From Magallana gigas (taxonomy: Eukaryota), in assembly GCF_963853765.1 (NCBI RefSeq), contig NC_088855.1:12090001-12154000 (forward strand): a DNA stretch of 64,000 nucleotides, read 5' to 3'. The notes under the pieces were generated by a model. That model saw only the letters and a list, made by a program, of their open reading frames with translations. It did not search any database and was not told the origin of the DNA. Of this stretch, positions 11,830-31,300 are shown piece by piece. The stretch's first letter is position 1, and the number at the start of each line of letters is the position of its first letter. The translations under genes and the position numbers were made by a program.

Positions 11830-11876
<47 letters not shown>

Positions 11877-12072: not shown

Positions 12073-12625
12073 TGTTGTTAAAAAAAAACTGGAATTAAAC
12101 AATATAAAAATAATGTGTCTCGGTCGCACTCAATTTAACTTTTGATATCAGTTTCAATGCATCTAAATCTGAAGGGCATGAAGATGGGGATTTTTTGTGT
12201 GTTTTATTATATTTTTTTGGCATAACGTTAAATAATACGTATTCATGTCTATTAACTTTTAAATGTGTCCTAGCGACTTTTTTGGCAAACGTTGGAACAA
12301 ATTATAAAAATTATTAGATCTGTATATTTTATAGCATCAAAAAAACTTTTCATTTAACCCCTGTATTAAACTACATGAAAATATAATAAATAGCCTAAGT
12401 AATCGACCGTCTTAAAGCACTGTTGGGCACTCAAGACTTCTTTTCCACGAAAATCGTAGAGTAAACGAATGACAACTCTTGGTTTCCCATTGCAACTGGA
12501 AATGATGAAATAAAAAATGTGGTAAGCATATTCTGTAAAATATTCAATAATGAACCATGAGAGTTGCACAGCGGCATTTATGATTATGACTGACATGAGC
12601 ATCAATATTGCATGTATATGGTACG

Positions 12626-12770
12626 CCAAATTCACAAAAATGAGCTAAACATAGTTTCACAGTCAACTGTAGTTTACGGATCGTAAACTATAGTTATACC
12701 GACGTTAATCTATATTTCACGCGATAATCTATGTTTCACATCTGTAAACTATAGTTAACACTGAAAACAA
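12626..12770. repeat. Fragment of a dispersed repeat with AAACTATAGTT motifs
   Basis: CGCCA(A/C)ATTCACAAAAA(A)TGAGCTAAA...CATAGTTTCACAGT recurs near 56915-56960 with the same AAACTATAGTT motifs. Confidence 0.6.
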
Positions 12771-12811
12771 TCATAGAAAATACACCAGACTTCTTTCAAA
12801 TTTTTAGCATG

Positions 12812-12817
12812 TTTATT
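12812..12817 (-). terminator. Candidate polyadenylation signal (AATAAA) of MsrA
   Basis: TTTATT on the plus strand, ~86 nt downstream of the SECIS in transcript direction. Confidence 0.5.
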
Positions 12818-12902
12818 TGAACTAATTAAATTATTTTTTAAACACAAATTATATGTATATCATGCAGTTCAAAATTTTTTATATTTGTGTACAGAAATCC
12901 AG

Positions 12903-12975
12903 TTCTTTTTAAAACCATCATTTTCTTGAAGGATGAAAACATCTACCTTTTATCAAGAAAAATCATCAGAAAGAA
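12903..12975 (-). promoter_or_regulatory. Type II SECIS element in the MsrA 3' UTR
   Basis: Minus strand: UUCUUU-CUG-A-UGAU-UUUUCUUGA-U-AAAA-GGUA-GAUG-UUUU-CAUC-CU-UCAAGAAAA-UGAU-GGUUUUAA-AAAGAA. It has an AUGA core, 11 nt to the AA run, a perfect 9-bp helix II, a GAUG/CAUC apical mini-stem, 3' UGAU completing the quartet and a 6-bp helix I. It lies ~155 nt after the TAA stop. Confidence 0.9.
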
Positions 12976-13129
12976 ACGAAATTTGATCTACACAAGCATG
13001 AAAAACATTAAAACTGTATCACAGAAATATATCACCTGATTAAAAACTACAGGGGTGGAAAAAGTGGAATAAAAGAATATCACAAACAAAACAGTCAACA
13101 TATGATGAGAACTTCTCAGGTAGAATTTA

Positions 13130-15836
13130 TTAGAAATGTGGAGCTTTCTTCAGCTGCTGTTCAACGTAACCAAGTTGTTTTCTAGTCAGTGACATACCCT
13201 CTGTGTCCTGAAATTGTATTGCAGAATATATATGTCAGGCAAAAAATAAACATTTTTGTTCAATTCTATAACTTCAATAAATAGTATATTATTTATTTTG
13301 AAACAAGACATCACAGAGATGGTGATTATTTTGTAAAGTAAAATTAGGATGAAAGGGACAGGTATTGGACCATGCCTTGACCTTAACTTGACCTCAAAAT
13401 TAGTTCAAAAGTCACTGCAAATATTCTTCTCATGGGCATTTTTTGTCTTAGGTATAAACCAGATAAGATAATTGAAAAAATATGTGGTCAGGACAAGAAG
13501 TTTGCAACAAAATCAGCCAACCCCTTGACTCCAGGCTCAGAAACTTAAATTGTTCAAATTCACTGCCTATAAACCATAAATTCAAATAAGACCAAGTGGA
13601 GAGAATATAGGCTTCAAACACCCGGCCCAAATTTTGTAGAGTCCTGCAATGACATTGATCTCTGATCTTGAAACATGCACCTATTTACCTATAAACCGTA
13701 AATTCAAATAAGGCCAAGGGGAGAGAATAAAGGCTTCAAACACCCGGCCCAAATTTTGTAGAGTCTTGCAATGATATTGATCTCTGATCTTGAAACATGT
13801 ATCTAGGTCATAGTACATACTCCACCATTTTCAATCATAGAGATCATAGAGATGTTCTGACTTCAAATCTTGGTTCAAAGTCAATGCACACCCTTAAAAA
13901 TTGTCAGTAATCTTTGACAATGTCATTTGATACAGAAAATTTGTTTGAGGTTGCTGCACACCCCTTTACATGAAGAAAATCTGTGGGTGAAGTTCAAGTA
14001 AAATAAAACAGGAGAAGAATGAACTCTGCACAAGAGGTATCAGACATCTCAACAATGGCATGAGGCATACTCCCTATAGTCCTCTGTGTCTCCGCAGAAA
14101 GAGTTGGTACATCGAAAGTTTGAGCCATGAGGGAGATAATAATCATAGTGATTACGTTTTCCTATCAAACTTTACTTAAAAAACTATTAAATATTTAATT
14201 CCTATGTGTACATGTATTATAATTATCTCTTTAATGAACAATTCATATACAATGTCTTAAGACTCATCCACCGGGTATCGCTTTAAGTCAGCCTAAAGTA
14301 GGCAAATGTATATTTTCAACTTCCATTTCATAAAAATGATAGACAATCCAGTTGTTACCTTTAGGAAATCTTCATAGTCTCCATAGCCCCCGAGATACCC
14401 ATTCAACTTGCAAGCTAGTGCAGAGGAGATGATTTCTTCATCTGATAGGTTCAAAGTGTCCAAAATATCCCTATGCTGTCTCAGAATGTATTTTTGGTGG
14501 TAACTGTTCAAAAGAAAATTTGGTGATATCAATGCGAGGAAGGTATATATTGTCTTTTTTAAATGACAAAAGATGCAAACTTTCTGTGCATGTTATAAAT
14601 TTTCCAAATGGCATCAATATTTTCTACAATGACATGAATTCAATACATGGATTAAAATAAATCACTGCTTTTTTGATATCACATGTAACTAATTCATTAA
14701 TGGGAAAGAAATGTCCTAGTATAAAAAAGGCTGATTGATACTGATATAGCATATATGTAATTGGAAAAGAGGAATGAGCATATAAATACATTGAAAACTT
14801 ATGCTGGACCGGGAATCGAACCCAGGACCCCTGCAACTCTAAGCAGGAGCTCTACCACTTAGCTATCCAGGCCAATATCCGCTGTCCATATAGCCCCAAC
14901 TACTATACATATATTATGTGTAAAACTGCACTTAATATTACATGAATGATCAAAGATTGACTCACTTTTCAGCATTGTAAAAAGGTCCTGCCTGGACAAT
15001 TTTGGTGACAATGGGGGATACATGGTTTTTCTGTTGTTCCTCTCGAGTCTGCTCAGCCAGCATTTTCTGTTTGGTACTGTGATAGAAGATGGCTGACATA
15101 TACTGAGTGCCACGCTGGGAACAAGGATTGTGACTTTTCCAGAACTTGTTTAACAGTTCCTCATAAGAAACAACACTTGGGTCAAATTCCAGGTCCACAG
15201 TTTCTGTATGATCCCCTCTAGAAATCACCAAATAAAGATCAATTATGCTTGGCAGAGACATATGTAACATAGTATATATATAGTATATATGCATCCCTGA
15301 TGCTTGGTCACCTTAAACCAAATTATTTAAATCTCAAAATTTTCATTACTTAGATTTTTTTTATTATTACAGGTGCTTCCTTGAGGTGGACATTTAACAT
15401 TAAATAAATCAATGTAATGAATTTTACATTGTTCTGTTAATACATGTACTGTTAAATATGTAAATGACCTCTGACCCTGGTCCAATGCCCAACTGGAACT
15501 CCAGAGTGGTCAGTCCAGTCTCTACCACGTACCTGTTCACATCTACCTGTTCTTGTCTTGTCTTTGTACTATGTATCATGCATGTTCCATATACAACTTA
15601 AGGTAAGGATTATTGCCTTATTTATTACATGTACCATGTTTACAAAGTATCGGTTATACAATAACAATTATAGCTTACATGGTGCGATAAGTAGGATTCT
15701 GGGTGGTTCCCCCACTGAATCCCACTCTAGTTTTCAGAACACCACGGAGAGCTCCAAACTGGGACTCTGGGAACCAAAATCAGCTGAGGGCGAAAGTCGC
15801 TCTTGACAATCTGCCAATATCTGATCCTCCAGGCAT
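13130..15836 (-). CDS. MSRA: Selenocysteine-containing peptide methionine-S-sulfoxide reductase (Sec-MsrA), ~210 aa
   Basis: Exons 15836-15679, 15217-14966, 14503-14359, 13207-13130 (633 nt, GT-AG, phase-consistent). Protein: MPGGSDIGRLSRATFALS-U-FWFPESQFGALRGVLKTRVGFSGGTTQNPTYRTIGDHTETVDLEFDP...QYMSAIFYH...FYNAENYHQKY...KAPHF*. The in-frame TGA is codon 19, in the GCFW-equivalent motif. Confidence 0.93.
13301..14105. mobile_element. Helentron/HINE-like non-autonomous element with internal ~122-bp tandem repeat, in the last MsrA intron
   Basis: Starts AAACAAGA, has TGACCTT-type motifs and a two-copy repeat at 13566-13799 (period 122). Family assignment is by recalled resemblance to bivalve Helentron derivatives. 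Confidence 0.45.
14802..14873 (-). mobile_element. tRNA-derived SINE-like head in MsrA intron 2
   Basis: GGCCTGGATAGCTAAGTGGTAGAGC...GGTTCGATTCCCGG contains Pol III A and B boxes and a T arm, but has an 8-nt anticodon loop and only 5/7 acceptor pairs. Confidence 0.65.
15780..15782 (-). other. In-frame UGA, predicted selenocysteine codon (MsrA catalytic residue)
   Basis: Minus strand reads GCC CTC AGC TGA TTT TGG TTC CCA GAG. MsrA homology continues on both sides in the same frame (ATFA upstream; FW..E, TRVGFSGG and PTY downstream). Confidence 0.9.
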
Positions 15837-16257: not shown

Positions 16258-17910
16258 ATGAGGAAAATGCTGCCAGGTTTTGGTGTCGTGGGAACTCCAA
16301 ATTCGGTCAGGGCGTATGTCCCACTTTTGAGATCATACGGTTTTAAAGTTGTAGCTCTTTGGGGCAGAACTAAAGAAGATGCTGCAAAAGTTGCAGCGGA
16401 ACTCAACATTCCTTTTCATTCCAGCAATGTTGATGAGGTAAACAATCTTTTTTATGGTATAGTATAATCAGATCAAGTTGCGCATATGCTTGAAATCACC
16501 AGATCACAGTAACCTTTTAGTTTCTGATTTTATTTTTTATCACTGCTGATCAGGGGTTTTCTTTAAACTTTATTGGTGAACCTTTTATTTACTACTGATC
16601 TAATAATAAGGAAAAAACATATTACAAGCAATAAATGCTTGAATAATACTTTGAAATGACCGTTTTTATTGGAGGGGGTATATGGACATAAAGAAACCCT
16701 ATTTTTGTCATTTAATACTTCTGTTTAGAGCTTAATGTGATTAACAGTGATCAACTTTGAATCATTTCAGGTCTTGCTAAACAAAGATGTTGATATTGTT
16801 GCAGTGACGTGTGCTCCACATATGCAAGCTCCCATTGCAGTCAAAGCCCTTGGTATGCAAATACATGTAATTCAGTTTCAGACAAGCATATATAATAGAT
16901 ACGCATCATATTTTAAATACAGACTTCCCATCAAAAATGTATTATGTCTATGATCTTTTAAGATTTATTTTTATTTTTTTATAGGTATAGGTAAACATGT
17001 TATCTGTGGTGCGCCAGCAGGGCCAAACCAAGTGGACTCCCTCCGCATGGTCAATGCAGCCAGATACTACCCACGACTGATGTCCCTGACAATCTACGGA
17101 CTGCGATTCCTGCCTGCTATTGACAAAATGAGGCAGCTGATTGTGGATGGCTATGTAGGAGACATAAGTATTTGTGAGGTCAAAGTTCACTTTGAAAAAA
17201 TTAAAAGAGATCAGTTTGATTGGATGTGTGATGGCACCATGGGAGGCGGTCTTTTGAATGAGATTGGCAGCGATATCATAGATGTGATTGGTTATCTAAC
17301 AGGACAGAAGGCAACAAAAGCACATGGCATGCTGAAAACATACACAAAGCAGACTGAGAAAATAAAAGGAATTCGAGAGATAACAAGTGATGATTTTTGT
17401 ACTTTCCAAATAGAACTTGACCAGGGGTCCTGTGTAACTGCAACAATCAATGGTCATATTGCAGGGCCATTTCAACAAGAGATAATGGTTATTGGGAATA
17501 AAGGCAGACTGACTGTCAAAGGAGCTGATCTGTATGGGCAAAAAAATGACCAATCAAAAGAAGAGTTGTTGCACTTTGACCCTATAAACTTTAAAGAGGA
17601 GGAGCGACATGGAGTGTCTGAAAAAACACGCACTTTTATTCCTACTCCCTACCTAAAGGGAATTATAAAGTTCATCGAAGCCGTAAAAGATGCATTTGAC
17701 AAAGAAGAAGAAAGACAGAGCTACTGCACCGACCCAGTAAGACCTGCAGCGTCATTCGAAGATGCTCTCTATGTGCAGTCTGTGGTTGAAGCCATCCGCA
17801 AGTCCAGTAAAACCAAACAGTGGATCAAGGTGGAAGTTTTACAGGAAGAGCCTGATCCCAACAACTTTATGTCGCCTTCTCTCCGACGTAGCGCTTACAC
17901 AGTTCAATGA
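16258..17910 (+). CDS. GFOD1: Glucose-fructose oxidoreductase domain-containing protein (GFOD1/2-like), ~395 aa
   Basis: Exons 16258-16437, 16771-16852, 16985-17910 (1188 nt, in phase). MLPGFGVVGT...GFKVVALWGRT...ALGIGKHVIC...AARYYPRLMS...GGGLLNEIGSDIID...SDDFCTFQIEL matches the GFOD (Gfo/Idh/MocA) family. GFOD1 vs GFOD2 orthology is not resolvable. Confidence 0.92.
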
Positions 17911-28335: not shown

Positions 28336-31300
28336 AAAAAAAAATCAGAATTGTATGGTGAAAGTAGGGGTAGGTTCCTTTGATGTTTTATTCATATTTT
28401 TATCGGTATAATTTTTTAAATGTTCATCTATATTAAACGATATATCAAATGATAGAGTTCTACCCCCCCCCCCCCCTTAATTTCGGATTTCTTATTCTTC
28501 TTTTTTTAGTCTCCAAGATGATAAATTTTGGGGAAAGGGACTGTAGATTGGCTCCCTATCGAAATAATAAATATATATATATTTTATTTAATCGGTAGAA
28601 AGCTAGCCTCTAAAACGTGTCAGAAGTTAAGTTAAATATATCAATCAAAAAAGATGTAATAGACAGGGAACGCATTCACACCATTTCTTAAATTATTCAT
28701 GCTAAAAATAAATCTTGATTTATTTCGGAGAACGCGTTTGAAGCTTTATTTCGCTTTATATGGTTGTGGGAAAACTCTTAACATTTTGCAGAGTGGAAGC
28801 CTTGTCTAGGTAAAAAGAAAGCCTTTTTAAAAAAATAAGCAAAGAGTACTAGTCCCCCTCCCCTATTCATAAAAATTGGGGGAGCCATCCTTTTAGACCC
28901 CCTTCCTCCCCAGACCAAAAGGGATTCAACCTACATGTATAACATTTCTCTCGCTTGTCCAAATACTTTCAGACGCCCGTGTACAATTTCACAAATGATA
29001 TATACACACTTTAAAGACTGAAATATTTTGTAAAAATGTAGAAATATACGTAATATGATTTTTTTTTTCTCTCTTTGAATATCAACATTATTTGAATATG
29101 AAGGTTGTGTGTATTAATTTTTGTAAGAACATTAAAGTATGCCATAATAGATTTGTTTGACAAATGTACATAATCACTTTTCTTCATCGATTTAATTTTA
29201 GTTTAAACAATATCGTCAATAATTATCATATATGAATATACTTCTAAATCAAACATATCATTGATAAATAAAAAAAATTATGAGTTGATAAGAGGTTCAT
29301 ATCTAAAAAAAATTCTATATATAATTTCTTGGTGGAGATGTTGGAATATGTTGGCGCATGGACTATACATCAACCGCCAACTCTATATATGCATTTATTG
29401 ATGCAGATTGTGGAATTTTTCTTCTCTTCTTTTTTTTTACAAGGGAAACTCAACAAAGAAAACATCTCTTGGGTGAAACAGATCAAATTTAAAGAATCAA
29501 CGTTTCAAAAATGTAAAATCAACCTCAAGATTTGGTGGCGGAAGGGGTAAGAGTTTGTTTGTGCCTTTTCCCACTTTTTTTAATGTGAGCTTTTCGTTAA
29601 TTTTTTGCTCGATCGTCATCAAATTCCATGCATGCTAGTGAAGTTGTCTCAATTAGTAGGTTTAGGTCAGACTATGCAAACAATTTCAATTAGTGTAAGA
29701 ATGTTTTACTAGGGTTAAGACGAGTTCAAATAGTTGGTACCTTTTTAAGAATAAGCATATACATATACATGTGTAAATTTGGTCGTACAATTGTAAGTCG
29801 CAAGTTCTTTTGTAAAACGCTATCAAGAAATATTAAATATATATTGCCCTGTCTTGTTTCTACCTTTGTGTACACATTACAAAACTAATTTAACTGTTTA
29901 AGTGGCAATCTAATATATTACGATTAATAATAAAAATTTGATGTATGACTGAATTTTTTACTTTTAAAGTCTATGATCATTCATACTGCTGGATCAAAAA
30001 GTGACTTAAAAAAATATTATTAATTTTTTTGCGTGCGTTTTAGACACGTGAATCCCCCCCCCCCCCCCCCCCCCCCCCAAGCGGTTACTGAGCACAAATT
30101 CATGTAGCGCCAACGCTTTATGGAAGAAAAAAGCAACACTCAAATGTTTTTTTTTCTTTCTATAATTTCTTAGAATAAGTTCTGGCATTATTTTTTAATT
30201 AGAACTAGCATTTTTTTTTAAATGTCTGCAGTGATGGTACGTTAGATTAATTTTGTTGCACATATCTTATCGTCTATCTGACTCTTTATAAAAGGGACAC
30301 AAAACACTATTTTGTTCTTTTCAAAAGAGACACACAGGTAATCTATTAAAAATCTTTCCGCTGACAATAAACAAGGATTAGGACGAGTAATGACGAAACT
30401 GATAAGGCGTATAACTATTCTCGCTGGCCAGCGCAGGTGGGAAAGTCTTTAGCGTGTACGGGAGATAACTGCGTGCGCCTAATCGGAAGTGGAAGGGATA
30501 CAGGTGCGGGACATTTGTTGTTAGTGGAGCTACGAGGAGGGATATGTTTTACATGCGTGTGTGATGTAGATTTTAAACGCCACAGGTATGTAATTATGGC
30601 TTCATAATTCACTTGAAATTGGCACCGCAGCATTTATAATTAAGTTGATCATGTAGTTGATAAATGTAAGCACTGCCGAGCAGCTTCGATTTTGGAGTTA
30701 TGTGAAACTTTTTTTTTATAGTAGTAAATATCTCTGTTGTGGCTTGATACAAAGAAAAGTTTAGGGTGTGTTTACTGTTCACACCTTAACAATGGGGTCT
30801 CTTTAATTGAAGATTGGGAATGGAGATTAATACATACCCATCACAAATCTCTGGAAAACTTCGAAGTTGACAAAGCCGATCTACTTTTTTTAAATGTTTA
30901 CAAACATTTCAGAACATGTACGTATTTTAGTGCACCAGATTAAAAAACCTCGTGTCAATGTTTATCACCCTACTAATGAATTAATCTCAACAAATACTGA
31001 CAATCTTGTCGTTTTTCAAACATGTTTATCTTTATTCCTTCAAATTTATAAAATGATTGTATCAAGTTTATAAATTCATTTTTATTGAAATGTATGATAC
31101 TGAATTAAAAAAAAAAACATTGATAACTAAATGTCCTCAAAATAGTTAAATAACTATATTTTTAATCATTAAATGAATAAAAATCAGCATGAAGACCTTT
31201 TATTTCAAAATTTGAATATTTTAAGTGATTTTTAAAAAAAATTATACATACACATTAATATTTTTTTTTTAAGAATACATAAGTATGATTATTATTTTTC

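Follow-up and report, generated by a model that had tools for sequence, protein, structure and literature searches.

Does the hairpin encoded on the minus strand at positions 12975–12903 of the window (the whole 64,000-nt stretch of oyster DNA analysed here, or 128 kb when both strands are counted) act as a SECIS, and is a UGA codon in the gene that carries it read as selenocysteine (Sec)? An initial annotation, drawn from the letters of the window, had proposed both. We consider it highly likely, judging from sequence, that the hairpin is the SECIS of a four-exon, 210-codon methionine-S-sulfoxide reductase A (MsrA) gene and that it serves the in-frame Sec UGA of that gene. The direct basis of this reading is the anatomy of the hairpin, its place in a spliced mRNA, the conservation of UGA and element alike, and the likeness of the element to the other SECIS of the genome.

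A hairpin with the anatomy of a SECIS

The element and the polyadenylation signal that follows it are composed of these parts:

12903–12975, minus strand: whole candidate SECIS element, with helix I, internal loop, AUGA/UGAU quartet, helix II, AAAA and apical mini-helix
12970–12975, minus strand: 5′ arm of helix I, UUCUUU, which pairs with 12903–12908 in the unconstrained MFE structure; TCTTT is invariant in four oysters
12963–12966, minus strand: AUGA, 5′ half of the quartet (SECIS core), invariant in all oyster orthologues
12953–12961, minus strand: 5′ arm of helix II, UUUUCUUGA, with nine Watson–Crick pairs to 12921–12929
12948–12951, minus strand: unpaired AAAA (AAR motif), which starts 11 nt after AUGA
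12932–12943, minus strand: apical mini-helix (predicted helix III), GAUG 12943–12940 with CAUC 12935–12932 and a UUUU loop
12921–12929, minus strand: 3′ arm of helix II, UCAAGAAAA, partner of 12953–12961
12917–12920, minus strand: UGAU, which completes the quartet on the 3′ side; its GA does not vary among oysters
12903–12908, minus strand: 3′ arm of helix I, AAAGAA; AAGA is invariant in oysters
12812–12817, minus strand: AATAAA, predicted polyadenylation signal; the RNA contig ends at 12815

Read 5′ to 3′ on the minus strand, the element is CGUUUCUUUCUG-AUGA-U-UUUUCUUGA-U-AAAA-GGUA-GAUG-UUUU-CAUC-CU-UCAAGAAAA-UGAU-GGUUUUAA-AAAGAA. AUGA (12966–12963) stands opposite UGAU (12920–12917), and the two abut the 9-bp helix II directly, an arrangement in which the quartet would take up non-Watson–Crick geometry. 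Both the nine Watson–Crick pairs of helix II and the 11-nt spacing to AAAA fall within SECIS norms (about 9–12 bp and 9–12 nt, respectively); the element is very A+U-rich (28% G+C), and its apical part after AAAA comprises 18 nt. The sequence features that the initial annotation had listed for this strand are all present at 12975–12903 with their coordinates confirmed, as is the AATAAA that it had placed downstream of the hairpin at 12817–12812. The hairpin shares with eukaryotic SECIS (RF00031, SECIS_1; bound by SBP2) a site in the 3′ UTR, the AUGA...GA quartet, a 9-bp helix II, AAA(A) at 11 nt, a predicted helix I below the internal loop and association with an in-frame UGA, and it differs from the model in being A+U-rich and in falling below the Rfam reporting level, as do most of the SECIS tested in this genome.

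If the hairpin works as other eukaryotic SECIS do, the tandem G·A quartet of AUGA and UGAU would form a kink-turn and recruit SBP2, eEFSec and the Sec-tRNA, with helix II setting the unpaired AAAA at its distance of 11 nt. The ribosome would then read UGA 15782–15780 as selenocysteine, and the outcome would be a full-length selenoenzyme in place of a stop after 18 residues.

A kink-turn can be read in another way, namely as part of a conserved 3′ UTR stem-loop that looks like a SECIS and has a different role, whether as a binding site for a kink-turn or L7Ae-type protein, in mRNA stability or localisation, or as a C/D-box-like RNA. The 5′ side, CUGAUGA, resembles a C box; the hairpin shares with the kink-turn of C/D-box snoRNAs (C box RUGAUGA, D box CUGA) the 5′ UGAUGA and the tandem G·A geometry; Rfam C/D snoRNA models give weak matches over it, at 12–17 bits; and the Rfam SECIS_1 model is silent. 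Those snoRNA scores are, however, far under the gathering scores of 43–60 bits, the D box is absent on the 3′ side, and the hairpin has an exonic UTR context and is without a snoRNA-like guide region. Moreover, the gene whose sense-strand UTR holds the element has UGA as its catalytic codon, the conservation of the element in oysters falls exactly on AUGA, on AAA at 11 nt and on GA, and a covariance model built solely from SECIS (R3, described below) ranks it first in the window. We therefore hold a stem-loop of other function to be very improbable. Identity as a C/D-box snoRNA was rejected: CUGAUGA is C-box-like, but no CUGA D box lies downstream.

The hairpin lies within the spliced MsrA transcript

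Exons and untranslated sequence of the MsrA gene were placed as follows:

15679–15836, minus strand: exon 1, coding part, from ATG 15836
15780–15782, minus strand: in-frame TGA, a predicted Sec codon where the catalytic Cys would stand (ATFALS-U-FWFPE); unchanged in the RNA contig
14966–15217, minus strand: exon 2 (GDHTETVDLEFDP...), placed by RNA joints and translation
14358–14503, minus strand: exon 3, with joints 13206/14358 and 14503/14966, GT..AG; junction ambiguous by 1 nt
13130–13206, minus strand: exon 4, coding part, with TAA stop at 13132–13130
12815–13129, minus strand: 3′ UTR, minimum extent by RNA; the contig is unbroken over 13206–12815 and continues, by splicing, into the exons upstream

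A 902-nt contig from an RNA library joins 15790–15679, 15217–14966, 14503–14358 and 13206–12815 across introns that are all GT..AG, and it differs from the genome in not a single letter, the in-frame TGA included. Raw stranded poly(A) reads from public RNA runs contain the same joints, and their strand fits minus-strand RNA. These RNA data add the exon at 14503–14358, which a plain reading of ORFs misses, and give a spliced ORF of four exons and 210 codons that ends at TAA 13132–13130. Because the spliced contig runs from the UGA exon to 12815, the hairpin is part of the mature MsrA transcript and lies in its 3′ UTR. Polyadenylation upstream of 12975, which the initial annotation had named as grounds for giving up its reading, is not what the RNA indicates, since the contig reaches 12815. 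The distances given at the outset also hold: the element begins 154 nt past the TAA stop (about 155 nt had been estimated), and the UGA placed 2.8 kb away in the genome is found at 15782–15780. In the mRNA, the AUGA of the hairpin comes 163 nt past the stop and 742 nt past the UGA.

Just beyond the 3′ end of MsrA, positions 12600–12780 of the window are a repeated element that attracts RNA reads from elsewhere; the reads there are many, lie on both strands and continue into unlike sequence at 12617–12664 and 12774. This repeat may be the reason that the RNA contig stops at 12815.

A predicted selenocysteine codon at the catalytic position

Translation of minus-strand frame 2 gives MPGGSDIGRLSRATFALS, then the TGA at 15782–15780, then FWFPESQFGALRGVLKTRVGFSGGTTQNPTYR, so that the peptide spanning the predicted Sec site reads ATFALS-U-FWFPESQFGALR. 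Within MsrA, the protein falls in the GDHTE subfamily (PF01625, PMSR, together with PF20939). Homologues of the Cys form have Cys at the position of the UGA (P0019, GCFWG; P0020, ACFW). The TGA itself is kept at no fewer than 11 orthologous loci, with coding conservation on both sides; these are the loci of C. virginica (L009), Ostrea edulis (L010) and Saccostrea echinata (L011), a Saccostrea-like transcript (L012), a transcript from a Crassostrea congener (L033) and six further invertebrate loci (L002–L005, L007 and L008).

Database models of the gene are shorter. The RefSeq C. gigas model, XP_011433133.2, has 118 aa and is 100% identical to the window over the matching part, and this 118-aa part carries PF01625 and PF20939. 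The RefSeq MsrA models of C. gigas, O. edulis and S. echinata are all 118 aa long and start at an internal Met, the upstream exon with the in-frame UGA being omitted from the models of these three oysters, which were the ones checked. Truncated gene models of this kind are the usual mis-annotation of selenoproteins. MsrA-like RefSeq or GenBank models of 116–134 aa occur in C. gigas, O. edulis, S. echinata, scallops, Dreissena, Mytilus and Mya (P0156, P0161, P0163, P0168–P0174).

The short models could also be taken at face value, in which case the SECIS would be a relic of a selenoprotein that is no longer made, with UGA terminating translation or with a downstream start as in the 118-aa RefSeq model. 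The internal-Met models of C. gigas, O. edulis and S. echinata agree with such a loss, as does the modest score of the hairpin with a generic SECIS model (below), but a 118-aa product would lack the catalytic residue along with half of the PMSR domain. Furthermore, in-frame amino-acid conservation flanks the UGA in all oysters (MPGG..RLSRATFALS-U-FWFPE..), the MsrA mRNA is spliced and expressed, and TGA and SECIS have been retained together as far as Ostrea and Saccostrea. We accordingly give the loss of the selenoprotein very little credence.

Decoding of the UGA as Sec, for which the initial annotation had cited the SECIS as independent support, is still a prediction, now backed by the spliced mRNA, by the position of the UGA at the catalytic Cys and by conservation in orthologues. 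Very probably, then, the product of the gene is a 210-residue selenoenzyme with an active-site Sec and not the 118-residue fragment of XP_011433133.2. Since Ostrea, Saccostrea, scallops, mussels and clams share the same truncated annotation, the whole bivalve MsrA family is probably mis-annotated.

One of the invertebrate loci (L008:10001-14195) holds two tandem MsrA copies, and a Sec-type active-site exon (ATFALS-stop-FWFPE) lies in the second copy, at 13738.

Conservation of the element among oysters

A homologous element is present in C. virginica, O. edulis, S. echinata and the Crassostrea congener, and it is the best-conserved part of the UTR. In C. virginica it reads ATGA-A-TTCTCTTGA-T-AAAA...TCAAGAGAA-TGAT and lies at +166 nt from the stop, the same offset as in the window. 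BLAST alignment of the UTR with the orthologous loci is essentially confined to the SECIS region. The transcript of the congener, which is 93.5% identical overall, matches the window at 72 of 73 positions of the element as against 191 of 216 (88%) in the flanking UTR (Fisher p 0.008), and the sole change within the element turns AAAA into UAAA, which keeps AAA; UAAA is the counterpart of AAAA in O. edulis also. A search for a SECIS in the invertebrate transcript L002 found none, and contigs L005, L006 and L012 are too short for such a search.

Several of the differences among oysters preserve pairing. At helix II pair 12959/12923 the window and Saccostrea have U-A, where C. virginica has C-G and O. 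edulis has U-G. In the mini-helix, the GAUG/CAUC of the window corresponds to GUUG/CAAC of O. edulis and to GUUA/UAAC of S. echinata, with one pair being A-U in some oysters and U-A in others. O. edulis and S. echinata each have one extra 5′ nucleotide, which on the predicted fold could bulge out while the helix gains a base pair at its foot. Across the four oyster sequences, 93% of cells pair, compared with 44–70% when the partner is slid; two pairs have double changes, a count that is matched by 78 of 500 shuffles and is not statistically significant. The covariation check suggested at the outset therefore yielded structure-keeping changes in a few pairs and fell short of significance with four oyster sequences; on these alignments we regard covariation as suggestive and not as proof.

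Rarity of the hairpin and its folding energy

Might such a hairpin have arisen by chance in an A+T-rich UTR? The UTR has a G+C content of 26–28%, and the unconstrained folding energy of the hairpin is ordinary, with a z of only −0.84 and 36 of 200 shuffles folding equally well; with the quartet kept open, z is −2.1. Against an origin by chance, a strict SECIS pattern (ATGA, 9–12 nt, AA, a helix II with 8 or more pairs and no gaps, NGA) has a single match in the 128 kb of both strands, and that match is the hairpin at 12975–12903. Second-order Markov simulations give 0.33 chance matches to the pattern per 128 kb (about 0.003 per kb per strand) and an expectation of about 0.0008 for one strand of this 315-nt UTR. 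A looser, energy-based scan likewise returns the hairpin as the best site on either strand of the window. In addition, other oysters preserve the element at an unchanged offset within diverging flanks, and because of these conservation data the chance reading, which we judge extremely improbable, can be regarded as effectively refuted.

The energy of the upper stem, −9.3 kcal/mol, is within the range of seven SECIS candidates found beside other selenoprotein genes of this genome (−7.1 to −16.4 kcal/mol). Helix I (UUCUUU/AAAGAA) is present in the unconstrained MFE structure, and when the quartet is constrained to be open the MFE structure swaps it for a local 3′ hairpin. We favour helix I as it was first drawn because both of its arms are conserved in oysters and the competing GGUUUU is not.

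The gapless pattern is a strict one and failed to pick up the SECIS of GPx_a, GPx_c, DIO_a, DIO_b and SelO_a in this genome. For DIO and GPx, the energy-based finder and covariance model R2 (below) recovered what it had missed; for SelO_a, none of the gapless pattern, the energy-based finder and model R2 found a SECIS.

Searches with SECIS covariance models

Infernal with a eukaryotic SECIS model had been proposed as a check. The Rfam model SECIS_1 (RF00031; gathering score 35 bits) gave no score: there was no match at E up to 10 in 10 kb, 201 nt or 85 nt around the hairpin, nor any at the orthologous loci of the other oysters, and an element of the distant orthologue L003 received 24.2 bits. 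As a control we used selenoprotein genes of the same genome located by an in-frame TGA or by family (three GPx, two deiodinases, Sep15/SelM, SelP and two SelO). Downstream of eight such genes (loci L013–L021), RF00031 reported only the two SelP elements, at 26–29 bits and thus below the 35-bit threshold, and genome-wide it found one site above threshold (L001, G000:C2:56415651-56415717, plus strand, 37.9 bits). Given that the control on other selenoprotein genes failed too, the silence of RF00031 at the MsrA hairpin is uninformative; the model is insensitive in this genome. RF00031 reports almost none of the SECIS tested here, which makes it a poor screen for molluscan SECIS.

We therefore turned to models built from oyster elements. 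Model R1, made from the elements of C. virginica, O. edulis and S. echinata with the window sequence excluded, has its best match in the window at the hairpin (12901–12976, minus strand; 47.1 bits, E 2e-8), and the next best match in 128 kb scores 15.3 bits. Model R2, a first rough model from the SECIS of other selenoprotein genes of the genome, recovered the three held-out GPx elements at 14.6–24.8 bits and placed the MsrA hairpin ninth, at 12.0 bits. Model R3, realigned from ten non-MsrA SECIS (two DIO, three GPx, Sep15/SelM, two SelP, SelO and L001), ranks the hairpin first in the window (12907–12978) with 19.2 bits and an E of 0.18 per 128 kb, followed by matches of 17.4 and 17.3 bits. R3 also gives the MsrA element as the top hit at the loci of C. 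virginica (29.1 bits, E 0.001), L004 (19.6 bits) and O. edulis (15.9 bits), and it scores the elements of S. echinata and L003 at 11.6 and 11.4 bits. The modest score of the window copy can be put down to its 8 extra apical nucleotides and its A+U-rich helix. As an independent model, R3 lends modest backing to the membership of the window copy among SECIS.

Several by-products of these searches were set aside. An alignment that used R1 as a scaffold for unrelated SECIS (A4) was discarded, as only SelP1 and SelO_b aligned properly, and L032, an opposite-strand candidate near GPx_a with 19.9 bits, was dropped for being without the 3′ GA. A search of the genome with PF10262 (Rdx) gave zero matches, probably by reason of short exons. 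Elsewhere in the window, positions 37922–37987 (plus strand) are SECIS-like, with 18.8 bits from R2 and 17.3 bits from R3, the motifs AUGA...GAA...UGAU and a helix that is rich in wobble pairs and contains two mismatches; the sequence upstream shows no evident coding ORF, and the likeness is probably due to chance.

Variation in the apical part and in the AAR motif

The initial annotation had called the hairpin a canonical type II SECIS. An extra apical helix is indeed predicted by folding, both in the GAUG/CAUC reading and in the MFE alternative, but the label does not extend to C. virginica, which is without the apical mini-helix. The elements of the window, O. edulis and S. echinata share the layout of a form 2 SECIS, in which the bulge of the AAA region is followed by a 4-bp mini-helix with a loop of 3–4 nt, whereas the C. 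virginica element (L009:8190-8256) is without 8 nt of the apical part and folds as the open loop of form 1. With form 1 in C. virginica and form 2 in the window, the form of the SECIS is not fixed even within a genus.

The S. echinata copy (L011:7911-7983) keeps AUGA, helix II, the mini-helix and UGAU, and the in-frame TGA of its gene is kept as well, but it has UUCAGG where other oysters have (A)AAA, and the AAR motif is missing. This copy may be decaying, may owe its sequence to an assembly error or may be a non-canonical SECIS; if it does function, it would be a case of an animal SECIS able to do without an AA (or CC) motif. The switch between forms 1 and 2 by an 8-nt indel, together with UCAG for AAR in an S. 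echinata gene that retains its UGA, might be taken as rapid remodelling of the oyster MsrA SECIS, a proposal that we find doubtful on the sequences at hand.

Relation to known selenoproteins

An oyster selenoproteome was reportedly published by Baclaocos et al. in 2019. Sec-form MsrA has been characterised in Chlamydomonas and, with a SECIS, is reported to be widespread in marine invertebrates (PMC3473315; PMC4244043). It has been described with a SECIS from a sponge, a placozoan, a cnidarian, an annelid and amphioxus (PMC3473315), and from a centipede, Daphnia, a tick and amphioxus (PMC4244043). With the Sec-MsrA of Chlamydomonas and marine invertebrates the oyster protein shares the PMSR domain, membership of the GDHTE subfamily, a predicted U in place of the catalytic Cys and a candidate SECIS in the 3′ UTR. 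Lottia gigantea, the mollusc examined, had no MsrA selenoprotein (PMC3473315); in contrast, an MsrA selenoprotein is predicted here in oysters and, from the truncated annotations, in many other bivalves. The oyster MsrA SECIS is a well-supported instance of a known system in a mis-annotated gene, and it is of use mainly for annotation. Biologically it is ordinary, given that Sec-form MsrA with a SECIS is already known from algae and marine invertebrates.

The neighbourhood of the gene

A divergent neighbour on the plus strand at 16258–17910 encodes an oxidoreductase of the GFO_IDH_MocA type, and C. virginica and S. echinata have the same neighbour upstream of their MsrA, which indicates conserved synteny. 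Intron 2 of MsrA holds a tRNA-like sequence (14800–14873, minus strand) that scores 40.2 bits with the Rfam tRNA model and to which ARAGORN assigns an anticodon of four bases (agag); a repeat of tRNA origin or a pseudogene is the probable explanation, and tRNA-like matches also occur within the O. edulis and S. echinata loci. The window further contains a run of about 35 C residues at 11839–11875 (plus strand) and a long run of G near 30060–30100 (minus strand).
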